A DNA stretch of 64,000 bases from positions 124,001-188,000 of IMG/VR virus record IMGVR_UViG_3300044213_000107; one strand, written 5' to 3'. A model generated the notes under the pieces. That model was not told where the DNA came from. It searched no databases and saw only the letters and a list, made by a program, of their open reading frames with translations. A program made the position numbers and the translations under genes. Positions 145 to 35,600 of this stretch are shown in pieces. Position 1 is the first letter of the stretch; the number at the start of each line of letters is the position of its first letter.

Positions 145-163
145 AATTTGTCTTTAAGTTAGA

Positions 164-183: not shown

Positions 184-201
184 ATTATACTGCAACCTAG
201 A

Positions 202-642: not shown

Positions 643-715
643 TTTTGTTTCTCCTTTATAAGCAAGTTTTATGACTAAGTTGTGTAGCCCACTATTGGCA
701 CTACACATTTATTTA
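643..715 (-). promoter_or_regulatory. ROSE-like RNA thermometer 5' UTR of hsp20
   Basis: CUUGCUU-AUA-AAGGAG (666-651) pairs over the SD with a bulged G; 5' hairpin at 707-681; TAAATA/TATAAT at 720-710. Confidence 0.55.
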
Positions 716-14081: not shown

Positions 14082-15209
14082 TTACAAACTAAATCCTTTA
14101 AATGTATTGGTGTCTACGTCTTGTTTTGTGCCACCAATAACATAACTACTAATTTCAGTTTCTTGTGGTGCAACCTGCACTTCACTGCCAGCAATCCATT
14201 TTTGTGTCCAAGGCAATGGATTACTGCCAGGTTTTAATCCGCAGTCTAAGCCTACTGCAGTCATTCGTTTGCAGGTCAACCAATCAACATAATCACACAA
14301 CAATTGTCTATTAAGACCGATCATCGATCCATCTTTAAACAAATACTCTGCCCATGCTTTTTCTTGTGCAGCAGCCTGTAAAAACATTGCTTCACATTCT
14401 GCCTTGGTTTCTTCTCTGATTTTGACGAAATCTGCATCGTCGCCGGGCAACAATTTAATAAGCATTTGAGTGCTTCCTAGATGCACATTCTCGTCGCGGC
14501 AGATCAATTTAATGATCTTGGCGTTGCCTTCCATCTTCTTTAACTCTGCAAATGCCCAACTACATGCAAAACTAACATAAAAACGAATACCTTCAAGTGC
14601 ATTTACCGAGTTAATCGCCAGCCATAGTTTCTTTTTTAGTTCGTAGGTGTCAACAACAACTTCTTTGCCGTTGACAGAGTGAGTCCCGGCACCTAATAAA
14701 TTATAATAGTTGCCATACTCAATAACATCATCGTAGTATCGACTGATGTCTCGAGCACAATTTGCAATTTCTTCAATGTCCAGTAGACCATCAAAGATTT
14801 CGCTAGGGTTGCTGTACACATTGCGAATAATATGTGTATAGCTTCTACTGTGGATAGTTTCGTTAAACGTCCACGTGTTGATCCAAGTTTCCAATTCAGG
14901 AATACTAACAAGTGGTAGCAAGGCCAAACTTGGACTACGGCCTTGTACGCTGTCTAATAATATTTGTCTTTTTAAATTACTAGTAAAAATGTGTTGTTCA
15001 AACGGTGTTAGTTCTTTAAAGTCCTTGGCATCACGAAGAACATCAACTTCCTCGGGACGCCAGAAGAAACCTAATTGTTTATCTGTTAGTTTATCAAATT
15101 GCCTGTATTTTAATGTTTCATAACGTTGTAGTGTTGTTGGGCCTGACGGGTCCAGAAACATAAGTGCTTCTGTATGTTTTGTTTTATTATTGATGTTAAA
15201 AACGCTCAT
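14082..15209 (-). CDS. nrdB: Ribonucleotide reductase class Ia beta subunit
   Basis: FFWRPEE, LLDSVQGR, ETIHSRSY, EGIRFYVSF, RDENVH, VAPQETE. Confidence 0.97.
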   Translation of the reverse strand: MSVFNINNKTKHTEALMFLDPSGPTTLQRYETLKYRQFDKLTDKQLGFFWRPEEVDVLRDAKDFKELTPFEQHIFTSNLKRQILLDSVQGRSPSLALLPLVSIPELETWINTWTFNETIHSRSYTHIIRNVYSNPSEIFDGLLDIEEIANCARDISRYYDDVIEYGNYYNLLGAGTHSVNGKEVVVDTYELKKKLWLAINSVNALEGIRFYVSFACSWAFAELKKMEGNAKIIKLICRDENVHLGSTQMLIKLLPGDDADFVKIREETKAECEAMFLQAAAQEKAWAEYLFKDGSMIGLNRQLLCDYVDWLTCKRMTAVGLDCGLKPGSNPLPWTQKWIAGSEVQVAPQETEISSYVIGGTKQDVDTNTFKGFSL

Positions 15210-15222
15210 TGTATTTTTGCCT

Positions 15223-17529
15223 TTAGATTACACAACTGTCGCAGTCTGCTTGATCTTCAACTGATGCAGTTAATTCTTGAATTGCTTTTGTTGCCATTCG
15301 GTCAACGTCTATTTCGCCTTGCTGATCGTTTGTTTGGAAATAATATAATTGTTTAAATCCATATTTGTAGCACATGATCAAATGCTTGAGCATCTCACTC
15401 ATTGGGATTTTTTCATCTTCGTAGAATTTGGGATTATACGAAGTGTTGACACTAATGCCTTGATCAACATATTTTTGCAATATTGCACATAATTTCAAAT
15501 AGCCTTCTGGTGATCGTTGGTCCCATAATAATTCATATTTGTTTTTAAGTCTACGGAATTCTGGTACTACCTGTCTCAATGCTCCATGTTTACTTTGTTT
15601 TACGCTTACATAACTTCTTGGTGGTTCAATTCCATTTGTACTGTTGCTGATTTGTGCAGATGTTTCTGCTGGCATAATTGCCATAAGTGTTGCATTGCGA
15701 ATGCCAGTGTCTAGAATCTGTTCACGGAGAGCACGCCAAGGCATACGCTCTTGGTGTTCAACTAATTCGTCTACTTCACGTTTGTATGTATCAACAGGCA
15801 AACGACCATCTGCATATTTTAGATCATGCCAACGTGTGCAAGGACCTTGTTCTCGAGCCAAATCTGCTGATGCTTTGATCAAGTAATAACTCCATGCTTC
15901 GGCATATTCATCAACCAATGACAATGCAGCAGGATCACTATAGCTAACGCCGTTTTTAGCCAGGAAGTAAGCAAAGTTGATGATACCAATACCCAGTGGA
16001 CGGAATTCTTGTGTGGCTAATTCGGCAGCACGAATAGGATAGTTTTGATAGCTTAACAATGCATCTAATCCGCGAACTGCTAGTCTACACATCTTTTCAA
16101 AGTCTGCGGGACCGCGAACATTACCCCAGTTGATTGCGCTTAATGTACATAATGCAATGCGGCCATTTTCGTCGTTAACATCGGTTAATGGTACAGTAGG
16201 TAAATCAATTTCACTGCACAAATTACTCATTTTGATTGGAGCAATTTCTTCTTTAAAAGGACTGTGGGTGTTGGCGTGATCAACATTCTGCAGATAGATA
16301 CGCCCAGTGTCTTTGCGTTCTTGCATAAATCTACTAAACAAATCAACTGCTTTAACAGTCTTTTTGCGTAGCTTGGTATTACGTTCTGCACGTTCATAAA
16401 GTTCTTTAAAACGCCCTTGGTCGTTAAAGAATGCTTCATACATTTCTGGTACATCATGGGGGCTAAAACAGGTAATATCGCCACCTGTAATTAGTCTTTC
16501 GTACATTAATTTGTTAAATTGGACGCCATAATCCATGTGACGTACACGATTATCCTCTGTGCCTTTATTGTTCTTTAAAACCAATAAATCGTCAATTTCC
16601 AAGTGCCAAATAGGATAGTAAATTGTTGCAGCACCATTACGCACACCACCTTGACTACAACTGCGTGTTGCTGCTTGAAATAATTTAAAGAATGGTGTTA
16701 CACCCGTGTGGTAGGCATCGCCGTTCCTGATAGGCGATCCCAAAGCCCGAATTCGTCCTGCACCGATTCCGATACCAGCCTTTTGGGATACATACTTGAC
16801 AATGCTACTAGCAGTAGCGTTAATACTATCGAGGCTGTCATCGCTCTCAATAAGAACACAACTACTGAACTGCTTTTGCGGAGTACGCACACCAGCCATG
16901 ACCGGAGTAGGTAAACTGATGTCGTGATTGCTGATAGCATCATAGTACTCTCTAATATAATGTAGTCTTTGATTTGTGGGATATTTTTGAAATAGTGTAG
17001 CTGCAATCAACACATAAGCAACTTGAGGAGTTTCCATGATAGTACCAGTTACACGATTTTGTACTAGATACTTTCCTCTCCATTGTTCCATTGCAACATA
17101 AGTAAAATTTTCATCACGTTCATGTTTAACAAAACTGTTAATTTGCTTCCATTCATCTTCTGAATAGGCATTGACTAGATCTTGATCATAAAATCCAACA
17201 GCGGCATTTTTACGAACAATATCTATTAACGGCCAAGGTTGATAGTTGTTGTATACTTCTTTACGTAGATGATAGTTAATTAAACGACCAGCTACATATT
17301 GATAATTAGGAGTTTCTTCACTGATAAGGTCTGCGGCACTTTTGATTAGTGTTTCCTGAATATCTGTAGTTTTAATTCCATTATAAAATTGTAAATGACT
17401 TTTTATCTCAACTTCACTAGCACTAACTCCTGTGATACCTTCTGTAGCCCAGAATACCACCTGGTGTAATTTTTCTAAATTTAAATTTTCTCGTGTTCCA
17501 TTGCGTTTGAGAACTTGTATTTCGCTCAT
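15223..17529 (-). CDS. nrdA: Ribonucleotide reductase class Ia alpha subunit with ATP cone
   Basis: ATP cone, QFSSCVL, SNLCSEI, MPAETSA, KQLYY, C-terminal CxxC. Confidence 0.97.
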   Translation of the reverse strand: MSEIQVLKRNGTRENLNLEKLHQVVFWATEGITGVSASEVEIKSHLQFYNGIKTTDIQETLIKSAADLISEETPNYQYVAGRLINYHLRKEVYNNYQPWPLIDIVRKNAAVGFYDQDLVNAYSEDEWKQINSFVKHERDENFTYVAMEQWRGKYLVQNRVTGTIMETPQVAYVLIAATLFQKYPTNQRLHYIREYYDAISNHDISLPTPVMAGVRTPQKQFSSCVLIESDDSLDSINATASSIVKYVSQKAGIGIGAGRIRALGSPIRNGDAYHTGVTPFFKLFQAATRSCSQGGVRNGAATIYYPIWHLEIDDLLVLKNNKGTEDNRVRHMDYGVQFNKLMYERLITGGDITCFSPHDVPEMYEAFFNDQGRFKELYERAERNTKLRKKTVKAVDLFSRFMQERKDTGRIYLQNVDHANTHSPFKEEIAPIKMSNLCSEIDLPTVPLTDVNDENGRIALCTLSAINWGNVRGPADFEKMCRLAVRGLDALLSYQNYPIRAAELATQEFRPLGIGIINFAYFLAKNGVSYSDPAALSLVDEYAEAWSYYLIKASADLAREQGPCTRWHDLKYADGRLPVDTYKREVDELVEHQERMPWRALREQILDTGIRNATLMAIMPAETSAQISNSTNGIEPPRSYVSVKQSKHGALRQVVPEFRRLKNKYELLWDQRSPEGYLKLCAILQKYVDQGISVNTSYNPKFYEDEKIPMSEMLKHLIMCYKYGFKQLYYFQTNDQQGEIDVDRMATKAIQELTASVEDQADCDSCVI

Positions 17530-17538
17530 TGATACCTC

Positions 17539-17991
17539 TTAATATTGTTCTAATTTTATGTCATTGCTGTTGTACGAATACTTCAGTACAAATTCTGTGT
17601 CTAATTGTTTTTTATTTACGATTTCCGTGTCAGTCAAATTAAGTATATATTTTCCCTCACGCAACCAAACTAAATTGTAATCATATCCCGTGGAACTGTC
17701 AAAATATATTTTTAACTCGGGTTTTAAGTCTTGGTTATGTTTTGTAAAAGCAATAGTATACACAATACCTAATGCTTTTGCAATATCACAGTAATAATTA
17801 TCAGAAATTAATTGCCATGGATCTGGCCATCCCTGCGGTGCCTTGGGATCAAGATAATATGGAACATAAGGGCAGGCAGCCCAAAACTGCTGTACTTGTT
17901 GTAAAGCAGTTAAGGTGTCAAGTTTATCTAGGCCGTCTCGAAAATGTTTCCAATGACTTATTCGTTCACTGGGTTTTAATTTGAACATCAA
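17539..17991 (-). CDS. Hypothetical protein
   Basis: 150-aa ORF coupled by an ATGA overlap. Confidence 0.7.
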   Translation of the reverse strand: MMFKLKPSERISHWKHFRDGLDKLDTLTALQQVQQFWAACPYVPYYLDPKAPQGWPDPWQLISDNYYCDIAKALGIVYTIAFTKHNQDLKPELKIYFDSSTGYDYNLVWLREGKYILNLTDTEIVNKKQLDTEFVLKYSYNSNDIKLEQY

Positions 17992-19304
17992 ACAAAAGTT
18001 TTTATGTTGTATTTAATTGTTGTATTAGTTGTGGTAGAATAACATGTTATTGTACCATTTTGTAAAAATAGGTTAGCAGATAATCCAGTACCAGTTTCAT
18101 TATAATTGTCACTGAACAAAACAGTTGTACCATCATAGGTATAATTTACTGTTCCGTATCTATAACTAACGCCGTTGGTTATAGAATAACTAATTTCGCC
18201 TCCGCCATTTGATACAGTGCCTAAGGTTGTAGTAGTGTTCTGCGGTAATCCTAGAGTTTTACCATTGCTGATTTTATAATCACCAGCATAAAATCCATGT
18301 TCTTTACTATAATATGTGTCACCAACACTGACATTGTTTGCATTAAATGTACGGTTAATGGGAATAGTTACATTCCCATAATAGTTGCTGACACTAGAAA
18401 AACCAACGGTAACGTTTGAAAGAACTGCGCCAGTTGTTAGATAATCAAACTCGGAATTTATAACACGTACACTACTTACATTATTGCCATTTAAATTAAT
18501 ACCGGTGGCACCATTTGAAAACACGCAATGATTGAACGTAACTGCTCGAGTGACGGTAGTAGAATCAATGTTTGCTAAAACTATGTTTGCAGCTGCTGCA
18601 AAACTGCAATTAAAAAATAACGCAGAATTAACAGAATCAATTTCTAAAACTGATTTAGTTGTGCTTACCGATGAATTATAAAGACCTATGCCTTCAACTG
18701 TGATGTTATTAGCAGGACCAGTTGTAGCAGTAAATCCAGCATTAACTGTTGACAATACTGGATATGATCCACCAGATTGTATTATTACTGTATTTAAAGG
18801 ACCTTCACCGTATAAAGTTGCATATGGCGGAACATTAACTGCACCAGAAATTAAATATTTTCCTGCGGGAAAATAAATTGCTCTTCTAGATCTATAGTTA
18901 ACAGGTGTTACGCTTGAATTATATATTTGTGTCAGTGCTTGATTGATAGCTGCAGTATCGTCGGCTACTCCATCGCCGATTGCACCAAAATCTCTGATAT
19001 TTACAAAATCATCTAACTTACTTTGTAGAGTTCTCGTTACTCCGCCTAATCCCGGGGAAGTTGCTACTGTATAACCAGTATCAGGTCCGACATATGAATA
19101 AGATTTAACAACACCTGCAATATTTGTATACTGAGTTAGAATTTCAGTAACACCTTCACTAGGTGCGCCTTCTTGAATGGTGCCATTGCCAATAAACAAT
19201 CTACGTTGGTCAAGACTCCACCCTAATTCTGCACTTGCTAACTGTGGTAAATCTTGTTGGTACCCACGTCTGTGTTGAATGCGTGATATTTGTACTACCG
19301 CCAT
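17988..19304 (-). CDS. Tailspike/fibre with a pectate-lyase-like beta-helix
   Basis: N-terminus QISRIQHRRG...ELGW; VNIRDFGAIGDGVADDTAAI...IYFPAGKYLI. Confidence 0.88.
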   Translation of the reverse strand: MAVVQISRIQHRRGYQQDLPQLASAELGWSLDQRRLFIGNGTIQEGAPSEGVTEILTQYTNIAGVVKSYSYVGPDTGYTVATSPGLGGVTRTLQSKLDDFVNIRDFGAIGDGVADDTAAINQALTQIYNSSVTPVNYRSRRAIYFPAGKYLISGAVNVPPYATLYGEGPLNTVIIQSGGSYPVLSTVNAGFTATTGPANNITVEGIGLYNSSVSTTKSVLEIDSVNSALFFNCSFAAAANIVLANIDSTTVTRAVTFNHCVFSNGATGINLNGNNVSSVRVINSEFDYLTTGAVLSNVTVGFSSVSNYYGNVTIPINRTFNANNVSVGDTYYSKEHGFYAGDYKISNGKTLGLPQNTTTTLGTVSNGGGEISYSITNGVSYRYGTVNYTYDGTTVLFSDNYNETGTGLSANLFLQNGTITCYSTTTNTTIKYNIKTFV

Positions 19305-19327: not shown

Positions 19328-20326
19328 TTAGTCAGAATTTTGCAAGGGCTTGATCTTAAAATTGGACTTGGGTAAATGCCCTTGCATAGGCAGTCTAGCA
19401 TCTAATTTGTCAGGAGTTAAATAAAATCCGCATTGATTACAGGTATTCTCGGGCAATCTTTGTGTTTCAAACCAAGCATCTATTTCATTATCTTGGGAGT
19501 TAATGCCCACCGTTTTATAATCTGTGTAATAAGGTGCCCAGTCAGGATCTTCTGTTAAGTTATAACGCTCAAGTGTATCACCTATAGTTGCACGTACTGG
19601 ACATTTGTAAACATCTCCACGATAAATTTGTACATAGTTTTTAATATGACACATTGAATGATTTTGATTTTTTGCTTCTGTGTCAGTGTAAGGCCAAACA
19701 GGTTTTAAGGTGCTTCCGTATCCAGTATAATGCGGCACAAAAGGACTGTCGTGTTGAGCAGTTAAATTTAAAATAACATAATGATTATCATCGTTGGGCT
19801 TGCTCAGTATACTAAATTTTTTATAATCAGCATCCCAGGGTATATCTGTTTTCCAATACCAACCTTTTCCAGGCCATTTTGCTTCGTACGCGGCTATGAT
19901 CATGTCTTTTAATTTGGCATAGTTTGTAACTACTAAACTACTATATGGTTCAATATCACTGTGTTTAGTAACACTTAATGCCATGTTAACACCATTAGGA
20001 TCAACAAAACATTCATCAATTCGATCAAACAATTTTTCTAAATAATAGCCATTTGTATTAACCCATACATGACCATTTCGTGGCCATGTACGACGTGCGG
20101 CCAAATACCAATCTACCACCTGCGGATGCATCAGTGGTTCACCACCAAAGAGATTAACACGCTCAGGATTAATTCGTTTGCCCCAGAACGCCAACCACTC
20201 TTCAGCATCTTCTAATCGTACAGTGCCTTTTACACGATCATGATCACTAAATGTGCAACACCCTTCACATGCCAATTGGCAACTGCGTATAATAACTAAG
20301 TCTAAATGTTTTACTGGATGCTTCAT
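19328..20326 (-). CDS. Radical SAM protein with a C-terminal SPASM/twitch-like region
   Basis: CQLACEGC, FGGEPL, NTNG, C..YKCP..CNQC; start reset to MKHPV (ATGA overlap). Confidence 0.9.
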   Translation of the reverse strand: MKHPVKHLDLVIIRSCQLACEGCCTFSDHDRVKGTVRLEDAEEWLAFWGKRINPERVNLFGGEPLMHPQVVDWYLAARRTWPRNGHVWVNTNGYYLEKLFDRIDECFVDPNGVNMALSVTKHSDIEPYSSLVVTNYAKLKDMIIAAYEAKWPGKGWYWKTDIPWDADYKKFSILSKPNDDNHYVILNLTAQHDSPFVPHYTGYGSTLKPVWPYTDTEAKNQNHSMCHIKNYVQIYRGDVYKCPVRATIGDTLERYNLTEDPDWAPYYTDYKTVGINSQDNEIDAWFETQRLPENTCNQCGFYLTPDKLDARLPMQGHLPKSNFKIKPLQNSD

Positions 20327-21033
20327 GCGGTTAGATAATATAATTGTACACGTTTCAACCACTCGTCTGACCAGTGTTTAAATTCTTCTGTGTCTACCAC
20401 AAACTCTAGATATTCAGGAGTTGAATACGATCCATCTTCTAGTTGTTTAGGTTGTACACACATCATAATAACACCTTGGTCGATGTTGGTACCGTGTGTT
20501 TCGTTGTGTGCGGCTGCATAGGCTGCTAGTTGTAAAAAGTAATCGCCGATGTATTCACGCCGTTTAACTTTGTTACTTTGCTTGAAGTCTATGATCGCAG
20601 GACGACCTTTGTATACACCAATGCAGTCTGTGGTGCCGGCGTATAGTCCCGAATAATACACAGGAACTTCAACACCCCAGAATTCACTGACATTTTCTAG
20701 TCCTTGTAGAATAACCTGTGCAGCCATAAACCACGACGGGTGGGCATAAGGATTTGAAGGGAACTGCATCATCTGCTCACTTAGTATATACTGTTCTAAG
20801 TAGGCATGCATTCGTGTTCCACGATTTGCGGCTTCTGTGACAATTTGTTGTGCACGTTGTTCTCCCACAGCCTTTTTCCAATTGGCCAATGCTTGCCGAG
20901 ATTCTTCACTTTTGGTTTTATCTAAGATTGTTGTTACAGACGGAACTTTACTGCCATCTGGCAAACAATAATGTCTTTTACCCTCTATAGTTGTTCTACT
21001 AAGAGGGGCATAATTATATGGAGATTTTATCAT
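20323..21033 (-). CDS. PD-(D/E)XK exonuclease (Cas4/MGME1-like)
   Basis: PSVTTIL, RGTRMH, YAGTTDC, IIDFKQS, QLAAYA. Confidence 0.88.
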   Translation of the reverse strand: MIKSPYNYAPLSRTTIEGKRHYCLPDGSKVPSVTTILDKTKSEESRQALANWKKAVGEQRAQQIVTEAANRGTRMHAYLEQYILSEQMMQFPSNPYAHPSWFMAAQVILQGLENVSEFWGVEVPVYYSGLYAGTTDCIGVYKGRPAIIDFKQSNKVKRREYIGDYFLQLAAYAAAHNETHGTNIDQGVIMMCVQPKQLEDGSYSTPEYLEFVVDTEEFKHWSDEWLKRVQLYYLTA

Positions 21034-21801: not shown

Positions 21802-22248
21802 TTAACTAGCGGCTGCACGGCTGGCCATTGCAGCTACCGTTTTGTTTTCTTTATCAGCATCACCTAAACCAGCATTGGCAGCATCTAAATCTGATCCTGT
21901 TTCTGTTGGTTCATCTTCATATGGTTCCAAATATACATATTCTTCACCGTTTTCATCTGGTTCAATATTTTTGATTAGGTTTTTAACCGTATCATTTTGA
22001 CTATATGCATCTTTAAGCACTCGAGCATTGAACATTTCCGCGCCGGCATTACGAACTTGGTTAATAAGAGTTTTAACACTAACACGTGGAACACTATGGC
22101 CCATTTCGTTTGCACGATTTTGTAAGTATACCAATTGATCAACTAATATATTATCACCGCGCACATCAGCATGATCTTCAATACCATCAGTGTCATCTAG
22201 GCCAAGACCCAGATCATCGTCTTCAACAATAAAGTCGCGTGCTCTCAT
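21802..22248 (-). CDS. Acidic hypothetical protein, possible head-internal protein
   Basis: N-terminus MRARDFIVE. Confidence 0.7.
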   Translation of the reverse strand: MRARDFIVEDDDLGLGLDDTDGIEDHADVRGDNILVDQLVYLQNRANEMGHSVPRVSVKTLINQVRNAGAEMFNARVLKDAYSQNDTVKNLIKNIEPDENGEEYVYLEPYEDEPTETGSDLDAANAGLGDADKENKTVAAMASRAAAS

Positions 22249-24990: not shown

Positions 24991-26943
24991 TCAAGGATTG
25001 TGTGCAAAGTTGGCTGCACTAAAAACTCCCCGATTAACTAGTTTTATTTGTCCAGCTGGAGTATTTACCACAAAACCTTCGCCTTCGGGTTTTCCGTTAA
25101 CCTGTTGATGTATACCAACAACTTGTCGGTTTAACTGTTGAACAAGATTTTCTTTTAATTGATATATTGCTGACCAAATTGATAATACCGCCATAGCCCC
25201 AGCGGACTGATATTTTACATAACCTGCTGCAGTTTCGTGTCCATTATTCTGCAACCAAGGCAATAAATCTTCTTGTGCTTGGCCGGTAATGCGTTTATTT
25301 GTATAGGTTTTTATCGCTTGTATAGTGTCAGTATCAGCAGATTTTAAGAATCCGTTAGCAGCCGAACCGTGTGTTTTAATTGCAGCCGCGGTGGCTTTTA
25401 ACAATTGCACAGGCTCATTTACACGGAATCGCAGGCCTGCGTTTGCAGTAAGTATTGCAACAGAATCATTCTTATTAAGGCCTTGCCCATTCCAAGGAAC
25501 TGACTTACTGCCGGGTTCGGCAAAATATTGATGTACAACTACTCCACCTGTGTGCGTGGCTATTTGTTTACCTAATGGACTATTAGCATCTACACTATAT
25601 TCTACTGTGTTAGGACGAAAATGATATTGTCCATTTGTGGGCGTTAATGCGCCGGCCCACAACAGATCACCCCAAAAATATCCTGGATTATTGCCAACTG
25701 CAGCTTCGAGGCCGGGCCATATGTGTCCTAATTTACGATATAAATCAGGTCTTAGATGCGCAGAAGATTTTTGTTGATCGTACTGTTCCCAGGCTCGTGG
25801 ACTATCTGCAAGTACACCCTTGTCAAACATGTACTTGTCGCTAACAGACAATTTTCCGTTGGCATCACGACCAAATACTAGTGCAGGTTTTCCGTCCCAT
25901 TTAATAGTAATACGATTTGGTTCTTGGACTGTTAACATTAATTCTTTTAATGCAGTAGTTGCAGAATCTACTCCTTCGAATATGCTGTCCTCGGGATGAG
26001 GGATTTCTCCGGGACGCATAATGCTTTCTATCATCTCACGAACTTGTCCGGCACGTGCTTGGCGTTCTGCAGCTTTGTGCGCTTTAAATTCGCTGGTTGT
26101 TACTTTAACCAAACGTCCATTAATGTTTAAAACTAAACCTTCAATGTTGGGTCCCAGTTTAAACTTGTCTAATATATTAGGATGCGTAAGTATGTACTCA
26201 GCTAGTTCATCTTTTACGGATTGTATAATTTGTTTTAAGTTTTCTTTTGCTGCTGCATCATCACGTTTACGACTTTGTAATGTAGCTGTAGCTTCAGGAC
26301 CGAGACTCATAATAGGATCAATAAAACCCGATATATCAATAGGACCTGCGGTTTTTAAATCAGCATTTACAAACTTTATGCTGTCATTGCTTTGTTTGAA
26401 CAAACTAACTAAAATAGCGTTAGAATCAGGATGCGATTCCCCAGTACTTGCAACCAGCACATCAAACGGCACTATAGTCATTACACGACCTAGTTTTTCT
26501 TGGTCGTAGTTAATGGTAACAAATTTAATGCCTTCACCGGATACCTCGCCCATGGGGTTATAAAATAATTCGCAGACTATTTTTGTATCAGGTGGTAGTG
26601 TTTGTACGAACTGTGATGAAGTTATTATACGCCATATTTCGTCATAATGCCCGGCACGCAATACAATCTCATCACTGCTACCGCGACTACGTGCATGTGC
26701 TGTAAATGCCCCAGGCTCAAATATAGGACCTGTACGTGATCCTTCAAAGAAAGGTCGACCATCGGAACTTACACCAAATCGTGCTCCAGCACCATCTACT
26801 TTTAAACTAACTTCTAGATTGCTGAGTTGTCCGTGTAGTGTTCGGCCAATGTGTTGAATAAACTGTACAAATTCGACATCGGGCATTTTCTGCAGATGCA
26901 GCATTCCTGTGCGAGCAGTTGTTTGCACTTCTTCATCGATCAT
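24991..26943 (-). CDS. Protein with two tandem ATP-dependent ligase/capping-type nucleotidyltransferase-like domains (DUF6267-like, from memory)
   Basis: LKVDG...CELF...PFDV...EGLVL..VKV and IKWDG...WGDLL...EGFVV..IKLV; the two KxDG motifs are 300 aa apart. Confidence 0.65.
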   Translation of the reverse strand: MIDEEVQTTARTGMLHLQKMPDVEFVQFIQHIGRTLHGQLSNLEVSLKVDGAGARFGVSSDGRPFFEGSRTGPIFEPGAFTAHARSRGSSDEIVLRAGHYDEIWRIITSSQFVQTLPPDTKIVCELFYNPMGEVSGEGIKFVTINYDQEKLGRVMTIVPFDVLVASTGESHPDSNAILVSLFKQSNDSIKFVNADLKTAGPIDISGFIDPIMSLGPEATATLQSRKRDDAAAKENLKQIIQSVKDELAEYILTHPNILDKFKLGPNIEGLVLNINGRLVKVTTSEFKAHKAAERQARAGQVREMIESIMRPGEIPHPEDSIFEGVDSATTALKELMLTVQEPNRITIKWDGKPALVFGRDANGKLSVSDKYMFDKGVLADSPRAWEQYDQQKSSAHLRPDLYRKLGHIWPGLEAAVGNNPGYFWGDLLWAGALTPTNGQYHFRPNTVEYSVDANSPLGKQIATHTGGVVVHQYFAEPGSKSVPWNGQGLNKNDSVAILTANAGLRFRVNEPVQLLKATAAAIKTHGSAANGFLKSADTDTIQAIKTYTNKRITGQAQEDLLPWLQNNGHETAAGYVKYQSAGAMAVLSIWSAIYQLKENLVQQLNRQVVGIHQQVNGKPEGEGFVVNTPAGQIKLVNRGVFSAANFAHNP

Positions 26944-28025
26944 TTTTTGTAGTAACTAGCGTGTAATTGTTGTATAGCAGCTTTATCATAAGGAACGGCT
27001 AATACACGTGTCATAAAGTTAAAGGCCGCAGTCTTTTCTTCATTGTCTCGTGTAGGATCATCTCGATAAAGTTCTTGCCCTTGTGGACCATATAATGTAT
27101 ATGCAAATCCTAGTATAACGCTGGCCTGTTGTTTGGCATTAAAATATTTTTTAACCAGTTCTAATGTTCCGACAAAACTCCAAAACTTGTTTACATCAGC
27201 AGGATCAAACTCATTGCCAAAGAATATGCGGCACATAGCCAACAAGTTTGTTTCGTATGTGCTTTCTTTAGTAGGAACTTCTTTAAACACAGGCAAGCCA
27301 TCTATTTCACGTTGTTGACCATTATCTACTACTGGTTTTAATTTATAGCGTAGGCCACGAGTTACTGCAAAAGCAAGATCAGTGGTTTTAACTTGTTTAG
27401 GTGTTTCTCGTTTGCCAGATAACACCACAACATCGCGCAGACTAGGTGTACTCAATGCTCGTAACAGGTATTTGTGGAATACACCTTTTACTCCCTGTTC
27501 TAGATCTTCCCAGGCACTGCTGTGACTAAAACGAGACCACTCAGTCGGTGCACCTTTTTCATATTGCACCTGCTCTAGATCAATCTGTACATTTTGGCCA
27601 AATTCTGTTAAATGCCATAGTGTAATAAACTGTTCAGCTGAAGTTTTATATCCAATGAATCTTGCTGGACCAATGGTTTTTCCTGCAGCAGAATCAAGGA
27701 ATTTTTGTATTGTTTCGGCGTTAGTTTCATCTACTTGTGTGTCTATGTCCCCGGCTTTGGTTTTCTTTGCACGTCTAAATGCATCGTCGGGCAACTCAAG
27801 ATTAAACCAATGTAAACTCGATCCACTTAAAAATTCTTGGCTCTTTAACAGTTTAGGATTCCATAGTGGATGTCCAGCAAATTTATGATATGCAGAATTT
27901 ACAGCGGCCAGTAATTGTTGTAACGTAGGTACCATTTGCTGACGTAGCTCAAGTTGCATTGCTTGTGCTTCTTGATCGCCAATTTGTACATTGCCACCTT
28001 CAATTAAAAATTCACGTGCTCTCAT
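26940..28025 (-). CDS. Pol-beta-superfamily nucleotidyltransferase-like protein
   Basis: LSGSS...AGDIDTQVD...VQIDL (GS, DxD and third Asp); N-terminus MRAREFLIE. Confidence 0.65.
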   Translation of the reverse strand: MRAREFLIEGGNVQIGDQEAQAMQLELRQQMVPTLQQLLAAVNSAYHKFAGHPLWNPKLLKSQEFLSGSSLHWFNLELPDDAFRRAKKTKAGDIDTQVDETNAETIQKFLDSAAGKTIGPARFIGYKTSAEQFITLWHLTEFGQNVQIDLEQVQYEKGAPTEWSRFSHSSAWEDLEQGVKGVFHKYLLRALSTPSLRDVVVLSGKRETPKQVKTTDLAFAVTRGLRYKLKPVVDNGQQREIDGLPVFKEVPTKESTYETNLLAMCRIFFGNEFDPADVNKFWSFVGTLELVKKYFNAKQQASVILGFAYTLYGPQGQELYRDDPTRDNEEKTAAFNFMTRVLAVPYDKAAIQQLHASYYKK

Positions 28026-29089
28026 TAACGGCTTTTCATCCTACGCCACAATGCTTCGGCTATGTCAACGGTTTCTTCGACTGGCACTTTTTCTAACGAT
28101 TGCATATAATTGCGTTGTTGTGGAGTCAAATTTGGTGCAGCAGGTGCCGCCGCAGCTATTGGAGATGCATATGGATTATTCATACTATAAGCACCTCTTG
28201 CTGTTGTTGCTTGTGGGAGTTTAGGCGTCTGAGGTTTTTTAGCTAACATACCTGTGTATGTTATATTAGGCTGTTGGCTAGACGCTGGAGTTGTTTGTGC
28301 TGTTGGCTCTACGGTAATAGAAGGTTCTGGTGTTGCTTGTTTAGTTCTTGAGCCGGTACCAGTACGTGCTCGTAGTGCATCACCAAATCTCCGATCTAGT
28401 CCCAAGGCATCTGCAGTACTGGCTGCATAACTTACTGGTGCTGATAACGTTCCCGGTGCTGCAGTTGGTGTATTGGCAGCAGCTGGTGTTGTTGCAGTTG
28501 GTGTATTTATAGCAGTCGGTTCTTCAATAGGTGCGCCACCAACTGCTTGTACTCCGGTGTTATAACCTTTCCTTGCAGCACGGCCTATGCCTTGTGGTAT
28601 ACCAGCTACCGCACCAACTGCTCCAGCAGCACCACCTAGAGCATTTGCTGCCCCTTTACCTACTGAGGTAACTGCTTTTCCTAAGTTAGTGCCTTTAGCA
28701 CCTAAATATTGTCCTGCTTGACCAACATCTTTTTCGACTGCGTCGTAAGCACCTGCACCTTTTTGAGCAATGTTTTTACCTGCATTGTATACACTTGAAA
28801 CAGGCCTTGCAACAGCTTGTCGAAATGTTTCTGCACCGGCATTGCCAAGTGCATTTGCGGCACCAGCAACTGCATTGCCAGTTTGTTGTAATCCTTTTGA
28901 GTACGCATTGGCTCCGCGCTCAATAGATTTTGCTCCGCGTTGTATGGCACCGGGCATTTTAGATAGTTTTTGGCCTGCCCATTTCGCACTTTTTCCTACA
29001 TTGTTTACCGCAGATTTTGCACCACGCCTAACATCATTCCAACTTAATTCATCTATTTGTTGTTCAGTTAAAACTTCATTTACTTTCAT
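28025..29089 (-). CDS. Ala/Gly/Thr-rich low-complexity protein, possible internal virion protein
   Basis: N-terminus MKVNEVLTE; amphipathic Gly/Ala repeats; PT-rich tail. Confidence 0.7.
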   Translation of the reverse strand: MKVNEVLTEQQIDELSWNDVRRGAKSAVNNVGKSAKWAGQKLSKMPGAIQRGAKSIERGANAYSKGLQQTGNAVAGAANALGNAGAETFRQAVARPVSSVYNAGKNIAQKGAGAYDAVEKDVGQAGQYLGAKGTNLGKAVTSVGKGAANALGGAAGAVGAVAGIPQGIGRAARKGYNTGVQAVGGAPIEEPTAINTPTATTPAAANTPTAAPGTLSAPVSYAASTADALGLDRRFGDALRARTGTGSRTKQATPEPSITVEPTAQTTPASSQQPNITYTGMLAKKPQTPKLPQATTARGAYSMNNPYASPIAAAAPAAPNLTPQQRNYMQSLEKVPVEETVDIAEALWRRMKSR

Positions 29090-29419: not shown

Positions 29420-30874
29420 TTATACTCCATTTTTTAACCCAGCCAACATCTGTTTAAGTTTAGTGCTTTTTGCTTCGCCTGTGACCTTAGGTGCACCACC
29501 GGGAGCAATATCAAGTGGATCAGCAATACCTTCTTTTAACTTTGGGATTTCCCATTTAGTAGCTGGTTTAGTCTCGGCAGTAGGGTTCTTTATTTGATTC
29601 ATGATATTCATTGATTTTACCGGGCCACCTCCTGCTTCGTTAGCATCTACACCGGGATCAGTGATACGCATAGTTTCAACGTTGTATTCTAGATCAATCT
29701 TTTGTCCTACACCAGTACTATTACGTGATTTCATACATTGTATTTGATAGCGTCCACGTTCACGCATTGCTCTAGATGTAAAAATACCAAACACATTATC
29801 TGCTGTGTTAATTTTACTGATACCACCGGCAATATGGCTGTGATCAAACTCAGGTTCATCTACTGCACTACGATTTAACTGACTTGCAGTTACCATTAAC
29901 ACGCCTAGTTCTTTGGCCAAGTTACGTAATTCTTCTGACACATACTTGTCCTTGATAAACTGATCATTGGGATTGACTTTGACACTCACTGGCATCAACA
30001 AATCCAAGTAGTCAATCATCATAAAGTCAACTTGACGTCCTGTTTGTATTTGATACTCTTTTAAGAAACTGCGAATGTCGTTGATGTTGCTTTGTGCCGG
30101 CAATGCTTTGATCTGATATGTTCCAGACTTTTTACCCACCATACGAACTTTGAGTTCTGTGGTTTCAATGTCCTTGCGAATATCTTTAGTACTCATACTT
30201 GCTAACATTGCATCTGTTCTAAGTGCGGTCATTTCTTCTGACAATTCTAGACTGATGTATACACCATGCAGTCCTGCTTGCACCCAGCTCAGTGCTATGT
30301 TCATCATAACCAATGACTTGCCTGAACCTGAACCACCAGCAAAAATATTAAGTTCGCCGCGGCTAAAGCCACCGTATAACAATCTATCAAGTTGTGGCCA
30401 ACCTGTGCTGACTTGTCCACCAGAATTAAAGTACCGGTTAATACGCCCACTGGGATCTGCAAAGTAGTCTGTGCCCATGTCCTTGGTTAGACTAATTTGT
30501 ACAGCGTCTTTGATAAGTTTCTCCACAGGCTCATATTCGCCTTTTTCCAACAGGTCTGCGGACTTTAAAATTGCACGCTCCAGCTCTTGACGACGTGTGA
30601 ATTGTTCAAATTCATCCAAAAACCAATTGCTGTTTGCAGCTGATACAGGAACTGCTCGAAGTTCAACGTTTGTGGTTGCTTTGATTTGATCATATGTAGG
30701 CAGAGTCTTGTATTTGTCTGAATACTCAATGATGAACTTTGCAGTTTCTCTAAGACTGCGATCAAAGTTTTCTGGATTGTAAATATTCTGCACTCGCACA
30801 AAATCCTGTGCATCAGACAGCATGGTTTCTAATAATAATTTTTGTAATTCTGTTGTGTATTCTTTAGTCATCAA
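29420..30874 (-). CDS. Replicative DNA helicase (DnaB/T4 gp41-like)
   Basis: GGSGSGKS, ISLELSEE, IDYLDL, TASQLNR, SHIAGGI..INTAD, MKSR. Confidence 0.93.
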   Translation of the reverse strand: MMTKEYTTELQKLLLETMLSDAQDFVRVQNIYNPENFDRSLRETAKFIIEYSDKYKTLPTYDQIKATTNVELRAVPVSAANSNWFLDEFEQFTRRQELERAILKSADLLEKGEYEPVEKLIKDAVQISLTKDMGTDYFADPSGRINRYFNSGGQVSTGWPQLDRLLYGGFSRGELNIFAGGSGSGKSLVMMNIALSWVQAGLHGVYISLELSEEMTALRTDAMLASMSTKDIRKDIETTELKVRMVGKKSGTYQIKALPAQSNINDIRSFLKEYQIQTGRQVDFMMIDYLDLLMPVSVKVNPNDQFIKDKYVSEELRNLAKELGVLMVTASQLNRSAVDEPEFDHSHIAGGISKINTADNVFGIFTSRAMRERGRYQIQCMKSRNSTGVGQKIDLEYNVETMRITDPGVDANEAGGGPVKSMNIMNQIKNPTAETKPATKWEIPKLKEGIADPLDIAPGGAPKVTGEAKSTKLKQMLAGLKNGV

Positions 30875-31923
30875 TGTTCCTGTAAATTACTATATAGTTT
30901 CTTTTTCTTTAGTTCAATCTTTAAGCGGCTCGTTTCTTTAGCGGCTAAAATACTTTTTAGCACAAACAATTTTCCATAGCGATCAACTGCGGCCGATACA
31001 TCTTTAATGTCGGCTTCCCATTCGGGGAAACTAACCGACCAGCCGTACTCTATAGCGGCATCAATAAGTTTTACGCCAGCACGGTCTCGATCTGGTACAA
31101 CAATAACCTCACGAGTTAAACTGTCAATAACGTCGGCTTGAATTTCACTACATTCATTGCCTAGTATAGCAACACCGTCAATGGCCATTGCGTCAAACGG
31201 GCCTTCAACTACAACAACAAATTTAGCGTCTGGCAGTTGTAGATCTGTGTTAAACACATAGTTAGACTCGTAATTAGAATGATATTTGGGCTTAACATTA
31301 TCTTCAATGGCTCTGGCAGTGTATCCAATTATTTCTTTTTTCCAAGTGAACGGAACAATAACACGCTTGTGTAAGTTGTATGCAGTAGTTTCTGTCGTAT
31401 AAAACTCGTACTTTTTGAAATCAATGTTTCGTTTGTAGATATAGTCAAATGCTTGAACAAACTGTGGGTGAACCAGTTCGTCTTCGTCTTGAAGCGTCAA
31501 AAACGTTTTCCACTGACTAAAACTAACACTGCTGTCGGGTAATGCCCTGGGTTTAAAATCAATTTCCTGTTGTGCTTCTTCCGCAAACGTTTCTGGGGGT
31601 GCTACTAGATCTTTTACGCGGATTGCTTCGATTACCAGTCGTTTGACTTCGTTCTCTGACGCACCAAACCATGATAATAGTTTTCGAAATTTATAAGTTA
31701 AGTGCCGGCCAGGAATATAACTAGCTTTGAAATTGCAGTTAAAGCAATGATATGAAACACCACCATCTGAGTTTATAACAATACCACCACGCCCACGAGT
31801 GTCCGCAGATTCACCGTTATGGTGACAACAGGGTGCGTTAAAACTAGTCCATCCCGAAATAGCATTAGTTTTACGTTTTACTGGCAATAATAGTTGTACT
31901 GCGTCTTGTATAGGCGTAAGCAT
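30871..31923 (-). CDS. DNA primase (zinc finger plus TOPRIM)
   Basis: PCC..YHCFNC, IIGYTAR, VEGPFDA, PDRDRAG, KDVS; leaderless TATAAT-6 nt-ATG. Confidence 0.9.
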   Translation of the reverse strand: MLTPIQDAVQLLLPVKRKTNAISGWTSFNAPCCHHNGESADTRGRGGIVINSDGGVSYHCFNCNFKASYIPGRHLTYKFRKLLSWFGASENEVKRLVIEAIRVKDLVAPPETFAEEAQQEIDFKPRALPDSSVSFSQWKTFLTLQDEDELVHPQFVQAFDYIYKRNIDFKKYEFYTTETTAYNLHKRVIVPFTWKKEIIGYTARAIEDNVKPKYHSNYESNYVFNTDLQLPDAKFVVVVEGPFDAMAIDGVAILGNECSEIQADVIDSLTREVIVVPDRDRAGVKLIDAAIEYGWSVSFPEWEADIKDVSAAVDRYGKLFVLKSILAAKETSRLKIELKKKKLYSNLQEH

Positions 31924-31962: not shown

Positions 31963-32694
31963 TTAAATGCCGTATCTGCCGCGAATTGAATTATGATTGC
32001 TGGCCATTTCGGTAGCGGATAACACTCTACTGTATATAGCCGCAACACCCACATTACCATTCCAATAGTTATCGGCCGCCCCAACATTTTCACTAGTAGC
32101 TGATTGATATTGATAAAATGTTACGCCAGATGTTGATGTACCTAGTTGTTGTCCATTGAAATAATAAGTTTGTACTCCGGCAGTAGTATGTGTAACAGCA
32201 CATGTAAACCAGTTGCCTGTGGTATAAGGAAGGTTAGCACTAAGGGTACCTGACCAACCGTTGCTAGGTCCTGTACTCCAATGTAGTTGATAGGCTGAAC
32301 CAGAATTGTAGGCATAAAGACTAAAGTTTCTATTATTACCTCCATTATCTGTACCTATCATATTACGATAAGTACCCGATGATAATGAAGCTATTGTGCC
32401 AGCAAAAAATACTGTCTTGCCAGTATATGTTTTATTAAATTTACTACTAGCAGAACTTGAGTACTGATTGGTTCCATTTAGGGTAAAATATCCGCCGGTA
32501 CTGGCGCTGTAGGAGGGTGAATTTTGTAGAGTACCATTGGCACCGTTACCGCTTAGGTCATACCAAGTTGAGCCGGTGCCGGGATAACTTGTGATATTAC
32601 CAGCATCAAGATATAACAATGTCGAACTGTCTTTAATAAAGTGTGCGTCGTTAACGAATCCAACGTTACGTAATGTTACGCCTTGAATAATCAT
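31963..32694 (-). CDS. LamG/Concanavalin-A-like lectin domain virion protein
   Basis: LYLDAGNITSYPGTGSTWYDLSGNG...YSRVLSATE...RYGI. Confidence 0.85.
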   Translation of the reverse strand: MIIQGVTLRNVGFVNDAHFIKDSSTLLYLDAGNITSYPGTGSTWYDLSGNGANGTLQNSPSYSASTGGYFTLNGTNQYSSSASSKFNKTYTGKTVFFAGTIASLSSGTYRNMIGTDNGGNNRNFSLYAYNSGSAYQLHWSTGPSNGWSGTLSANLPYTTGNWFTCAVTHTTAGVQTYYFNGQQLGTSTSGVTFYQYQSATSENVGAADNYWNGNVGVAAIYSRVLSATEMASNHNSIRGRYGI

Positions 32695-35600
32695 TACAAT
32701 CTCTCGATGGTTACAAAGTTGCCGTATGGACTTGAAGCACTAGTTGTCATCCAAGTGATGCGATACATTTTGTTAGCAGTTGTATCTGTGAGTACAGTTG
32801 TAGCAGATGACCCTGCTGCACTAAACCACCATCCAGCGACTCCTAACAGAGCAGGAGTTGTAGTTGCTGACATAGTGCTATTCGTACCTTGAGCGTTAGC
32901 AACTGTGCCACTACCAAGTTGATAAGTTATAGCATAAGCATAAGTGGTAGTACCACTTACTGTGCCAGCATAAATCCATACACCGCTACCTGATGTTTTG
33001 ATTTGTATCGCTAAGTTGTCTAATGACAATGTAGTGTTAAGTGCTAAGTTTGCTGCTGAAGCCTTGGCAATCCTTCCGCCACCAGGAACAACAACATCGC
33101 CGCCCACTGGATTTAGCACAATAGCGTATGGTGTGGCATTGCCACCATAACCACTTTGTATCCATTGAGCATAACTAACACTAGTGCCGTTTAATGTAGC
33201 ACCCGACGGATACTGACCAAAGGTCAAGTAGTTGCCACCAGCACCACCTAACACTATACCAGCACCTGTTTGAATAGCACTGGCAGTTGGAGCAACTTGA
33301 ACCCCGCTTAAAATACTATGTTGTTGTACAAGATTGTTATTGCCAACAGTTAAGTTGCCAGCAACACTAACAGTATTGCCAAACCAAGCTGGAGTAATAC
33401 TAGTAACTACAAACTGTCCTATGCCATCTGGATTAACAGTAATATTACCGTTGGTACCACTGGTACTAGTAAGTGTGGTATTGCCACCAAACACAAGATC
33501 ACTGTTTGTTGGCATTGTCAAGTTGCCGGTGTTATCAAATGTAAATGCGTAACTACCAGCCACCAAGGTAACGTTAGAACTTGATCCTGTAATGTTTCCG
33601 GTACTGTTGTAGTTTAAGTTAGTCAGGTATTGACCACTACCAACAAAGTTAGCGGCCGTGACGTTACCGGAGTAAGTTGATGTGGTGCCAATACTGTTGC
33701 CGTATTGTGTGCCCGAAATATTACCCGCTGTGATATTGCCTAGTAAGTAAGCGGCTACTTGTGTATTACCGTAACTGATCGATGTAAATGGAGTTCCATT
33801 AGCATAGAAAAATCCAGAAGCCAACACATTGCCTGCTGTGATGTTGCCGGTTGTCGAGACTGTGTTGCTACCAAAGCCGGACAATAGTGCTGTAACATTG
33901 GCATTACCATAGATTGTCTGCGGTGCAGCCAGTTCAATAAACTCCCATTGTGGTCCACCAGCTTCACCGAATGTAAATGACCCACTCCAGGCGCCAACAC
34001 TACGAACTGTGTATGTATGTGAGCCTGCTGCGGGAGTATCAATGGTTGAAATGTTGTAACTGACATTCATACCACTTACACCGCTTTCAAGCCAGAATTG
34101 ATTTCCTATTGCAGTGCCATCTCTGTAAAACTGTATTTTACCGTATTGGCTTGATCCGCCAGGATTAGCATCACCGTTCAAACTAATATAAACAGGGAAT
34201 CCATATGTGGTAAATGTTGCTGTGGCAATAGTTTGACCAGTAGCTGTAATACTTCCACTAATGCTGTTAGTCTGAATACTATAGTTCATTGGCACTTGAA
34301 TATTGCCAGTGTTTAAGGGACCAAATGTACCGTTAGCATACAACACATTTGTTGCACTACCTGTCAAGTTGATTGCACTGATATTACCCAAATTAGTTGC
34401 TGAGATATTACCAACTGAGATGTTGCCCGATAGGTAAGCCGCTACGTTAGTGTTGCTGTATGTACCTGTTTGTGGATTAGCAACAAGGTAGGCAGCTACT
34501 TGTGTGTTGCCATAGTTACTTGACGCAAACGGAGTTCCGTTGGCCCAGAAGTAACCAGATGCCAGAATATTTCCAGCCGATACATTACCAGAATATGTTG
34601 GCAAATAACTTGCTACGTTAGCGTTGCCGTATGTTCCACCAATACCAGACAATATTGAAACGCCATTTGCAGCCCAATAGTAACCGCTGCCATAAAAACT
34701 TTGTGCATTGCTGTTTTGGCCTACACTAATATTGCTGTTAAATTGTGCATTACTAGACACTGTTAGTCCCAGATTCACCGCCGAGCCATTAACGTTAATT
34801 CGGTTGTTGAAACTAATGCCACTTCCGTTGTCAGTAGTAATAGTATTATCTAAACTGTGGAACTGCATATGACCTATAGTCAAATTGCCAGTAGATACAT
34901 TTCCAGATAACAAAGCATTTACATTGGTATTACTATATGTTGAGCCAGTAGCAAAGTTTGTATTAGCCCAAGTATAAAAACTACCAACGTTGGCATTTAA
35001 TGTCTGAATACTTGTGTTGGCTGCAGTTACGTTAGAGTTAATGCCTGTGATGATACTGCTTGTTGGCAAATAACTTGCTACATTACTATCATTATAGTTA
35101 CCGGTAGAACCAGACAATGCGGTTCCGTTAGCATAAAAATAACCCGAGGCAAATACATTACCAGAGTAAATATTGCCCATAATCACCGAACCATTAGCCT
35201 GAACTGCAATAGGTGCAGTGGCTGCGGCTGCATTAGCATCAAATGTAATTAGTGCACGAGTCACACCTGACCCTGGTGCACCATTGTATCTGTATAATCC
35301 AAATGTATTGTGTACGGTACTGCTGTTGTTGGTATGACCAACCCCGGCTGCGTCCCACCAATCCCAATCCCAGAGTACGGTATTCTTAAATCCCGATGCA
35401 GGATTACCAAAACTAACTGCAAGATTTCCGGTGTTAACCCCATCACTCCAGTTGCCAATTTCTAACCAGGTGCTAGGGTTTGTGTTGTTTATACCAGTAT
35501 AACTTTGTATATGTATTTTACCAGCACCGCCACTATTTAAATTAATACCTACGCCCGAGTCCAGACTACTAATTGTATCGCCCGAAAAAGTAATGTTTCC

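Follow-up and report, generated by a model that had tools for sequence, protein, structure and literature searches.

The 64,000-nucleotide stretch of DNA analysed here (the window) covers positions 124001-188000 of the IMG/VR record IMGVR_UViG_3300044213_000107, a jumbo phage record of 260,723 bp with an estimated completeness of 74%. Two open reading frames (ORFs) in the window encode a protein of 361 amino acids (aa), P0002, and a protein of 650 aa, P0001, and are joined by an ATGA overlap that was read directly in the DNA as 'aaaaaATGAtcg'. A preliminary description of this DNA had taken them for a coupled pair, made up of a Pol-beta-type nucleotidyltransferase (NTase) and a protein with two tandem ligase-like domains, and both the ORFs and their overlap were found as described. 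They belong to a module of phage enzymes that is real and conserved and has so far not been characterised. The coordinates of all features are collected in Table 1.

P0002 belongs to phrog_19290, a family of unknown function, and no Pfam family matched it at E values up to 1, the Pol X families and RlaP (PF10127) included. A profile built on 66 relatives of P0002 recovered 751 clusters (50% identity) at E values up to 0.001. The residues invariant across the 66 homologues were GGN 10-12, SGS 67-69, GDxD 92-95, QxDxE 147-151, K180, K185, and R226, among them the GS...DxD...D signature (as SGS, GDxD, and QxDxE) to which the preliminary description had drawn attention. The sequence fits the Pol-beta pattern hG[GS]...[DE]h[DE]h...h[DE]h, with 24 residues between GS and DxD against the usual ~10. 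The AlphaFold (AF2) model of P0002 had a predicted local distance difference test score (pLDDT) of 93.5 and a predicted template modelling score (pTM) of 0.88, and it was compared with known structures both by Foldseek and by an unbiased, Foldseek-independent scan of 48,161 PDB chains. In that scan, 27 of the 28 top matches were Pol-beta-superfamily NTases; the exception, ranked 26th, was a small alarmone synthetase. The best-scoring Foldseek matches likewise belonged almost entirely to this superfamily. The catalytic core of ~100 residues was matched by TUT7, Trf4, OAS2, GLD-2, and PAP with root mean square deviations (rmsd) of 2.6-3.2 A and Z scores of ~7.5-8; for TUT7, the rmsd over 97 residues of core positions 25..162 was 2.6 A (Z 8.0). 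The longest alignments came from Pol X enzymes, since TdT, Pol beta, Pol lambda, Pol mu, and Pol X of African swine fever virus (ASFV) aligned over 162-193 residues of model positions 1..285 with Z scores of 7.0-7.5 (for ASFV Pol X, 162/176 residues and Z 7.2). Structures of OAS, cGAS-like, and CD-NTase enzymes were also among the matches, and the ESM-Atlas neighbours of P0002 were consistent with the PDB structure searches. PDB sequence and profile searches with P0002, P0001, and their alignments gave no matches. Beyond the core, the model contains an extra C-terminal helical domain and the N-terminal GGN element, and neither an 8-kDa nor a fingers domain was identified in it. The modelled fold and the catalytic triad establish P0002 as a Pol-beta-superfamily NTase, the fold that had been proposed for it. 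Its predicted palm-plus-thumb layout resembles that of a minimal Pol X, and its catalytic core those of terminal uridylyl/adenylyl transferases. The identification of P0002 as an RlaP was rejected because PF10127 was not matched; a profile search likewise found PF10127 neither in the genome of this record nor in four phages that carry the module.

The two KxDG motifs of P0001 lie exactly where the preliminary description had placed them (K48VDG and K348WDG), and the segments resembling motifs III, IV, and V that it had reported after each of them proved to be conserved in the 26 relatives of the N-terminal domain and the 43 relatives of the C-terminal domain. In motif IV, E622 was invariant among the C-domain relatives and E268 nearly so among the N-domain relatives; in motif V, K634 was invariant, and K280 almost so (at least 90% conservation). 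Each domain also has a conserved histidine ~32 residues before the motif I lysine (in HL.. and in PHPED). Over all six frames of the genome, the ORFs of 100 aa or longer (92,670 residues in total) contain the K.DG motif 15 times, or ~0.1 times per 650 aa, and P0001 is the only ORF of the genome that contains two. The spacing of 300 codons between the two motifs, correctly noted for P0001, was not conserved. Two relatives of full length, P0004 and P0005, have spacings of 306 and 304 codons, so that the value of 300 carries no meaning and is a coincidence.

The C-terminal half of P0001 (residues 315-647) was matched by PF19782 (DUF6267) with an E value of 4.7e-35 and 122.1 bits (cut-off 27), and DUF6267 is present as a single copy in the genome. 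Pfam ligase families, PF01068 and PF01653 included, matched neither P0001 nor the 26 N-domain relatives. The AF2 model of P0001 had a pLDDT of 85.2, and among the PDB structures found for it by Foldseek, the best 50 were all RNA or DNA ligases or a capping enzyme. When compared by VIA-align, the two halves independently matched the NTase domains of ligases, the N half (model positions 6..292) aligning with residues 122..338 of the Naegleria RNA ligase (NgrRnl) at Z 7.1 and the C half (310..647) with its residues 143..339 at Z 8.6 over 186 residues. With the same tool, T4 Rnl2 gave Z 6.7 for the N domain, and T4 Rnl2, T4 DNA ligase, ASFV ligase, and human Lig1/3/4 gave Z 5.5-7 for P0001. The RNA ligases Rnl3 and Trl1 were other close solved structures, and the N half matched a cluster of the AlphaFold database (AFDB) named 'RNA ligase domain-containing protein' with an E value of 2.4e-6. 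In the register with NgrRnl, obtained by counting back from the aligned C-terminal ends and thus inferred from ranges rather than from a residue-level alignment, K280 and K634 fall exactly on K326, and E268 and E622 fall within two residues of E312. According to the secondary structure of the model, both domains end shortly after motif V, an oligonucleotide-binding (OB) domain being absent from either, and in both a helical insert separates motif IIIa from motif IV. A comparison of the N-domain and DUF6267 profiles by hhalign linked the motif I region only (probability, 5%), so that the common ancestry of the two halves rests on fold and architecture and not on sequence. These comparisons identified in P0001 two complete ligase-type domains, putatively forming lysyl-NMP, that are closest to the nick-sealing RNA ligases of the Rnl5 type, and bore out, catalytic residues included, the assignment of two ligase-like domains made in the preliminary description.

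Elsewhere, the halves of P0001 occur as modules of their own. Most DUF6267 relatives are stand-alone proteins of ~362 aa, and the N-type domain is found in proteins of ~495 aa or in fusions; the combination of N and C domains seen in P0001 is rare (4/120 relatives). Fusions of the NTase with a ligase-like domain were found in other phages: among 150 representatives of the P0002 family, 101 were single-domain proteins and 45 (~30%) were fused to an N-type ligase-like domain. In 38 of these 45, the motif of an HxGH nucleotidyltransferase ('GSFxGHxGH') followed directly behind the ligase-like domain. DUF6267, for its part, was fused in at least 14 of 120 relatives to a second, shorter NTase ('EGGNVF..GS..GDLDL') that carries EGGN, GS, GDxD, and QxD motifs and was only weakly linked to the P0002 family by hhalign (probability, 26%). 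In 7 more DUF6267 relatives, an unassigned segment of similar kind (256-272 residues) followed DUF6267, with the HxGH domain next in 5 of them. A functional link between the NTase and the ligase-like domains is thus supported by gene fusions in other phages. As a separate observation, P0250, P0251, and other relatives are polyproteins of up to 2078 aa that chain P0002-like NTase, N-type ligase-like, and HxGH domains; the tail of P0250, the only tail examined, contains a further minimal GS/DxD nucleotidyltransferase, and a few polyprotein relatives also carry Amidoligase_2, DUF6934, or ParB_N domains.

Members of these families also occur as neighbouring genes. T4-like phages have the module genes side by side, on the downstream side of the gene for the gp41-type helicase. 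Stenotrophomonas phage Moby encodes the NTase as gp048, the N-type ligase-like protein as gp050 (hhalign, 95.5%), and the HxGH protein as gp051. In Xanthomonas phage BUDD, a P0002-like NTase gene lies downstream of the helicase gene, and a gene of the HxGH cytidylyltransferase family lies two genes further on. In cyanophage S-RIM2, DUF6267 is followed by a 1021-aa 'cytidyltransferase'. Two further proteins located within the module, gp049 of Moby and SWTG_00142 of S-RIM2, were matched by none of our profiles. In the record studied here, the corresponding HxGH protein (362 aa) is encoded ~115 kb from the pair and was missed by the preliminary description. Its motif GRFQPFHRGH fits the NadM/NMNAT signature GRFQPxHxGH, and it is homologous to the C terminus of the fusion protein P0087, i.e., to the domain that is fused in other phages. 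The families of the phrog_19290 NTase, the N-type domain, and DUF6267 all look virus-only. Judged by these fusions and neighbourhoods, the pair belongs to a phage-wide three-enzyme system in which a putative HxGH adenylyltransferase is the third member. The genome also encodes a second HxGH enzyme of 164 aa, of the glycerol-3-phosphate cytidylyltransferase or RfaE type, at record positions ~122563..122937 (-).

Table 1. Features of the NTase/ligase-like locus and related genes. Positions are those of the window unless marked "record"; (-) denotes the minus strand.
Feature	Position	Strand	Remarks
P0002, 361 aa	26940..28025	(-)	ORF; Pol-beta-superfamily NTase (predicted)
P0002 leader MRAREFLIE, residues 1-9	27999..28025	(-)	putative capsid-targeting and prohead-protease cleavage propeptide
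P0002 G10-G11-N12	27990..27998	(-)	invariant; predicted mature N terminus
P0002 NTase motif G68-S69	27819..27824	(-)	invariant, 66 aligned homologues
P0002 NTase motif D93-I-D95	27741..27749	(-)	invariant, 66 aligned homologues
P0002 third carboxylate D149 (in Q147-I-D149-x-E151)	27579..27581	(-)	invariant, 66 aligned homologues
P0001, 650 aa	24991..26943	(-)	ORF; two tandem ligase-like (covalent nucleotidyltransferase) domains (predicted)
P0001 N-terminal ligase-like domain, residues 1 to ~300	26044..26943	(-)	without Pfam family
P0001 motif I K48VDG, N domain	26791..26802	(-)	K, D, and G invariant, 26 relatives
P0001 N domain, motifs III E125, IV E268-G269, V K280	in 26044..26943	(-)	conserved, 26 relatives
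P0001 C-terminal ligase-like domain, residues ~310-650	24991..26016	(-)	Pfam DUF6267
P0001 motif I K348WDG, C domain	25891..25902	(-)	K, D, and G invariant, 43 relatives
P0001 C domain, PHPED (H316), motifs III D426, IV E622-G623, V K634	in 24991..26016	(-)	conserved, 43 relatives
Upstream ORF, 354 aa	28025..29089	(-)	coupled to P0002 via TAATG; low complexity, Ala/Gly/Lys-rich
Other leader-bearing ORFs, window	21802..22248, 28025..29089	(-)	leader pattern
Other leader-bearing ORFs, record	record 32633..33130, 67244..67789, 90038..90928, 90928..92562, 220465..220839		leader pattern
Class Ia ribonucleotide reductase subunits	14082..17529	(-)	context genes
Tail-spike-like pectate-lyase protein with Mtd_N domain	17988..19304	(-)	context gene
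DnaB-type helicase and primase	29420..31923	(-)	context genes
Fibre-like protein, 1607 aa	32694..37517	(-)	context gene
HxGH NadM/NMNAT-like protein, 362 aa	record ~34055..34438	(-)	outside window
Canonical ATP-dependent DNA ligase, 447-aa ORF	record ~84289..84846	(-)	PF01068; outside window

The N terminus of P0002 is consistent with packaging into the capsid. In 133 of 266 members of the P0002 family, a leader of 7-14 aa ends in [LIVMF]xE immediately before GGN; 55 of the 266 have the same ending on a longer leader, and 53 (20%) start leaderless with MGGN. Among the 47 leaders of 10 aa, position 4 was F in 45, position 7 was F or Y in 45, position 8 was L or I in 46, and position 10 was E in all 47. 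In phage T4, the N terminus of the internal proteins IPII and IPIII reads MKTYQEFIAE followed by A (from NC_000866), residues 4 and 7 of this leader having been assigned to capsid targeting and residues 8 and 10 to processing (PMC9026906). The leader of P0002 is one residue short of the 10-aa consensus, and its likeness to the T4 leader is one of the family. The GGN that follows would be the mature N terminus, produced by cleavage of the leader or, in the proteins starting with MGGN, by removal of the methionine. The genome encodes a prohead protease of the gp21 type (PF03420), and the leader pattern M[KR]x2-4[ED][FVILM][ILVFMT]xE was found in 8 ORFs of the genome, P0002 included, against 0 in the reversed-sequence control. 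This pattern suggests that the jumbo phage has a whole set of capsid-targeted, protease-processed proteins. Similar leaders were frequent on stand-alone DUF6267 proteins and on HxGH proteins; the HxGH protein of this record starts with MFIAEMFIKE, which resembles a capsid-targeting sequence. In proteomes from cyanophage virions, 'cytidylyltransferases' (the HxGH partner) are reported to have been frequently detected (PMC10665884). The 354-aa ORF coupled to P0002 upstream begins with MKVNEVLTE, a leader of the same kind, and probably encodes a co-packaged protein, to judge from this leader. Pfam and PHROG searches gave no match for it, and its homology to proteins at the same position in relatives was considered and dropped, since the similarity was not significant.

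A DNA-level search among known phages did not find a close relative of the window. Its gene order recurs elsewhere: helicase, module, and pectate-lyase protein follow one another in the window and in the relatives L007 and L009, the ATGA coupling is also present in the syntenic L009, and the DnaB/gp41 helicase and primase adjoin the module in the window, L007, L009, Moby, BUDD, and S-RIM2. In two related, syntenic jumbo contigs, the slot of the module is occupied either by an NTase together with an N-type ligase-like domain or by DUF6267 together with an NTase-like protein of the 'EGGW' kind. The window contains zero tRNA genes. A radical-SAM protein with weak QueE-like matches, 19328..20362 (-), and a PD-(D/E)XK exonuclease, 20323..21033 (-), are encoded 4-5 kb downstream of the pair, and the module has radical-SAM/QueE genes at its side in Campylobacter phage CP220, Moby, and BUDD as well.

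Of the functions considered, we tentatively place first, with a confidence that stays somewhat below even, a virion-delivered kit for processing nucleic acid ends, which would extend 3' ends and seal breaks, the incoming phage genome being its favoured substrate. P0002, possibly with its partners, would be loaded into the prohead, trimmed to the Gly-Gly-Asn N terminus, and delivered to the cell together with the injected DNA. There, it would add one or a few nucleotides to the 3'-OH at a break or gap, and these would likely be ribonucleotides, as with Pol mu or the polymerase domain of LigD. A ligase-like domain of P0001 would then form Lys-AMP, adenylylate the 5'-phosphate, and seal the 3'-OH/5'-PO4 junction. 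The favoured targets would be nicks, gaps, and nuclease cuts of the incoming genome, which could be mended before phage genes are expressed, and the NadM/NMNAT-like HxGH enzyme may supply NAD+ as an adenylyl donor or make another dinucleotide. DNA is suggested as the substrate by the synteny with replication genes and by the long Pol X alignments.

A number of results weigh against this proposal. P0001 itself is without a targeting leader, and the NTases of Moby, BUDD, and a Vibrio phage start with MGGN and are leaderless, so that packaging is not universal. Because of these two observations, packaging appears to be lineage-dependent, and for P0002 it is putative; the earlier suggestion of possible virion delivery is nonetheless supported at the level of sequence by the leader of the IPIII type on P0002 and by the gp21-type protease. 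The phage already encodes a canonical ATP-dependent DNA ligase, and for this reason the idea that P0001 is its only or its replicative ligase was rejected. The structural Z scores all lie at ~7-8.6, which counts as 'middling' by the tool's own scale. RNA ligases head the ligase matches, and enzymes that tail RNA 3' ends head those to the NTase core, which favours RNA as much as DNA. Prediction of a complex between the N domain and P0002 yielded no answer, simple filling and sealing does not account for what the HxGH partner does, and neither publications on DUF6267 nor biochemistry for any of the three families were found.

The main rival explanation, somewhat less likely than this kit, is repair of RNA, in particular of tRNA, by a system of the type of RlaP plus RNA ligase. 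The NTase would restore 3' nucleotides after attack by anticodon nucleases or ribotoxins and the ligase-like domains would reseal the RNA, and injection of the enzymes would let repair start even where translation was already blocked. RNA is suggested as the substrate by the similarities to RNA ligases (NgrRnl/Rnl5, T4 Rnl2, Rnl3, Trl1, and the AFDB cluster) and to TUTases (the P0002 core being nearest TUT7, Trf4, and GLD-2), by the absence of an OB domain from both ligase-like domains, and by the precedents of Pol-beta NTases beside RNA ligases in jumbo phages (PMC7824862) and of tailing by RlaP (PMC12776372). P0002 is nevertheless no RlaP, end-healing enzymes (kinase, phosphatase, or 2H phosphoesterase) were not seen in the module, the module accompanies replication genes and not tRNA clusters, and the virus-only appearance of the three families is unlike that of RlaP systems. 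The distribution of other ligases was considered for both substrates. Neither Rnl1 nor Rnl2 was found in the genome fragment of this record or in S-RIM2, which favours the RNA reading, but Rnl1 is present in Moby, CP220, and BUDD, and Rnl2 also in BUDD. The DNA reading is favoured by S-RIM2, which has DUF6267 and in which neither an ATP- nor an NAD-dependent ligase adenylation domain was found. Clean complementarity of the module with Rnl1/Rnl2 or with DNA ligase was rejected because Moby, CP220, and BUDD hold both the module and canonical ligases. Redundancy arguments thus do not separate the DNA reading from the RNA reading, since this phage has a canonical ligase and some carriers have Rnl1 or Rnl2.

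The NadM-like partner is explained by neither DNA nor RNA repair, and for this reason NAD-linked or small-molecule chemistry and end-capping have to be weighed as well. Three nucleotidyltransferases might produce dinucleotides or recycle them, be it NAD+, Ap(n)A, or a nucleotide that serves in signalling, and so counter NAD+-depleting defences or interfere with host nucleotide signals, with the ligase-like domains acting as adenylyl carriers and not joining polynucleotides. The NadM/NMNAT signature of the third partner and its place directly behind the ligase-like domain in most fused representatives would suit such a system, as would the OAS, cGAS-like, and CD-NTase structures among the P0002 matches and ligase-like domains without a recognisable nucleic-acid-binding OB domain. 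However, those structures matched P0002 no better than polymerases or TUTases did, the full sets of ligase motifs are conserved, including motifs IV and V of the nucleic acid steps, and Nampt, Nudix, and other salvage genes were not seen in the module; we accord this explanation a small chance. A slim one falls to the modification of ends in place of their repair, in which injected enzymes would leave a blocking group (for example AppN, an NAD-like cap, or a short untemplated tail) on 5' or 3' ends of the genome or of RNA, against host exonucleases or sensors. The packaging leader and the NMNAT-like partner are compatible with it, either of the two ligase-type domains could halt after step 2 (5'-adenylylation), and T4 gp2, annotated as a packaged protector of DNA ends, provides a precedent. 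Against it, the motif V lysine of the later nucleic acid steps is conserved in both domains, and the leader is missing in several lineages.

A bolder version of the end-processing proposal is improbable. Here, a Pol X/TUTase-like NTase, one or more Rnl5-like ligase domains, and a NadM-like adenylyltransferase would form a capsid-packaged machine injected with the genome, a new class of ejection proteins that recycles NMN to NAD+ and repairs or caps ends before phage expression; in T4-like cyanophages without a canonical ligase, DUF6267 would perhaps be the long-missing DNA ligase. For none of the three families (the NTase of phrog_19290, the N-type ligase-like domain, and DUF6267) has a function been described, and yet they are common, DUF6267 being present in T4-like cyanophage genomes by the hundreds. 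Should these enzymes be packaged and serve in repair or end editing, they would be a new kind of cargo among phage-injected proteins, they might include the ligase that marine cyanomyoviruses seem to lack, and biotechnology would gain new ligases and terminal transferases of compact size. A clear three-enzyme hypothesis that can be tested also follows from the fusions.

The preliminary description had stated that it knew of no functional description of the pairing; analogues exist, however, both in RlaP with RNA ligases and in Pol X with ligases (PMC7824862; PMC12776372). Repair systems of RlaP (PF10127) and an ATP-dependent RNA ligase have been described both from bacteria and from phages (Burroughs and Aravind 2016; PMC7824862; PMC12776372), Pol-beta NTases have been documented beside RNA ligases in jumbo phages (PMC7824862), and RlaP adds 1-2 NMP to the 3'-OH of RNA (PMC12776372). 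The module resembles these systems in the genetic coupling of an NTase of the Pol-beta superfamily with a KxDG ligase and in its occurrence in large phages, with a proposed logic of adding to a 3'-OH and then sealing. It differs from them in that PF10127 is not matched, in that the ligase-like domains are neither Rnl1 nor Rnl2 and stand two in tandem, and in having a NadM-like HxGH third partner, a capsid-targeting leader on the NTase family, and seemingly virus-only families. With Rnl5 (NgrRnl of Naegleria gruberi and DraRnl of Deinococcus), the likeness lies in NgrRnl being the best structural match of both P0001 domains over ~185 aligned residues. Unlike Rnl5, to which identity is 7-13%, P0001 has a conserved His motif (HL.. 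and PHPED) ~32 residues before the lysine, its motifs IIIa and IV are set apart by long helical inserts, and the N-terminal OB-like module of Rnl5 is missing, as the alignments span residues ~122-339 of NgrRnl and only 30-45 residues precede motif I. From classical DNA ligases, P0001 is set apart by the lack of an OB fold after the NTase domain and of a PF01068 or PF01653 match.

Pairs of Pol X and ligase (in ASFV and in giant-virus fusions) and bacterial LigD likewise link or fuse a small polymerase-type NTase to an ATP-dependent ligase. In the ESM-Atlas, a cluster of ligase-Pol X fusions from giant viruses was a weak structural neighbour, with a template modelling (TM) score of 0.39 by query and 0.24 by hit against the same-fold mark of 0.5. 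Unlike the Pol X-ligase pairs, P0002 is without a Pol X match in Pfam and has an extra C-terminal helical domain and GGN, and its ligase partner is without OB or DNA-binding domains; the polymerase domain of LigD, moreover, has a primase-type fold and not that of Pol-beta. With T4 IPI, IPII, IPIII, and Alt, the module shares the leader determinants (aromatic 4, F 7, I/L 8, and E 10), and its genome likewise encodes a protease of the gp21 type. Its putative cargo consists of nucleotidyltransferases, as opposed to small basic anti-restriction proteins or an ADP-ribosyltransferase. The pairing is therefore a variant of the known repair systems of NTase plus ligase, made distinct by its tandem ligase-like domains, its HxGH enzyme, and its T4-type leader.

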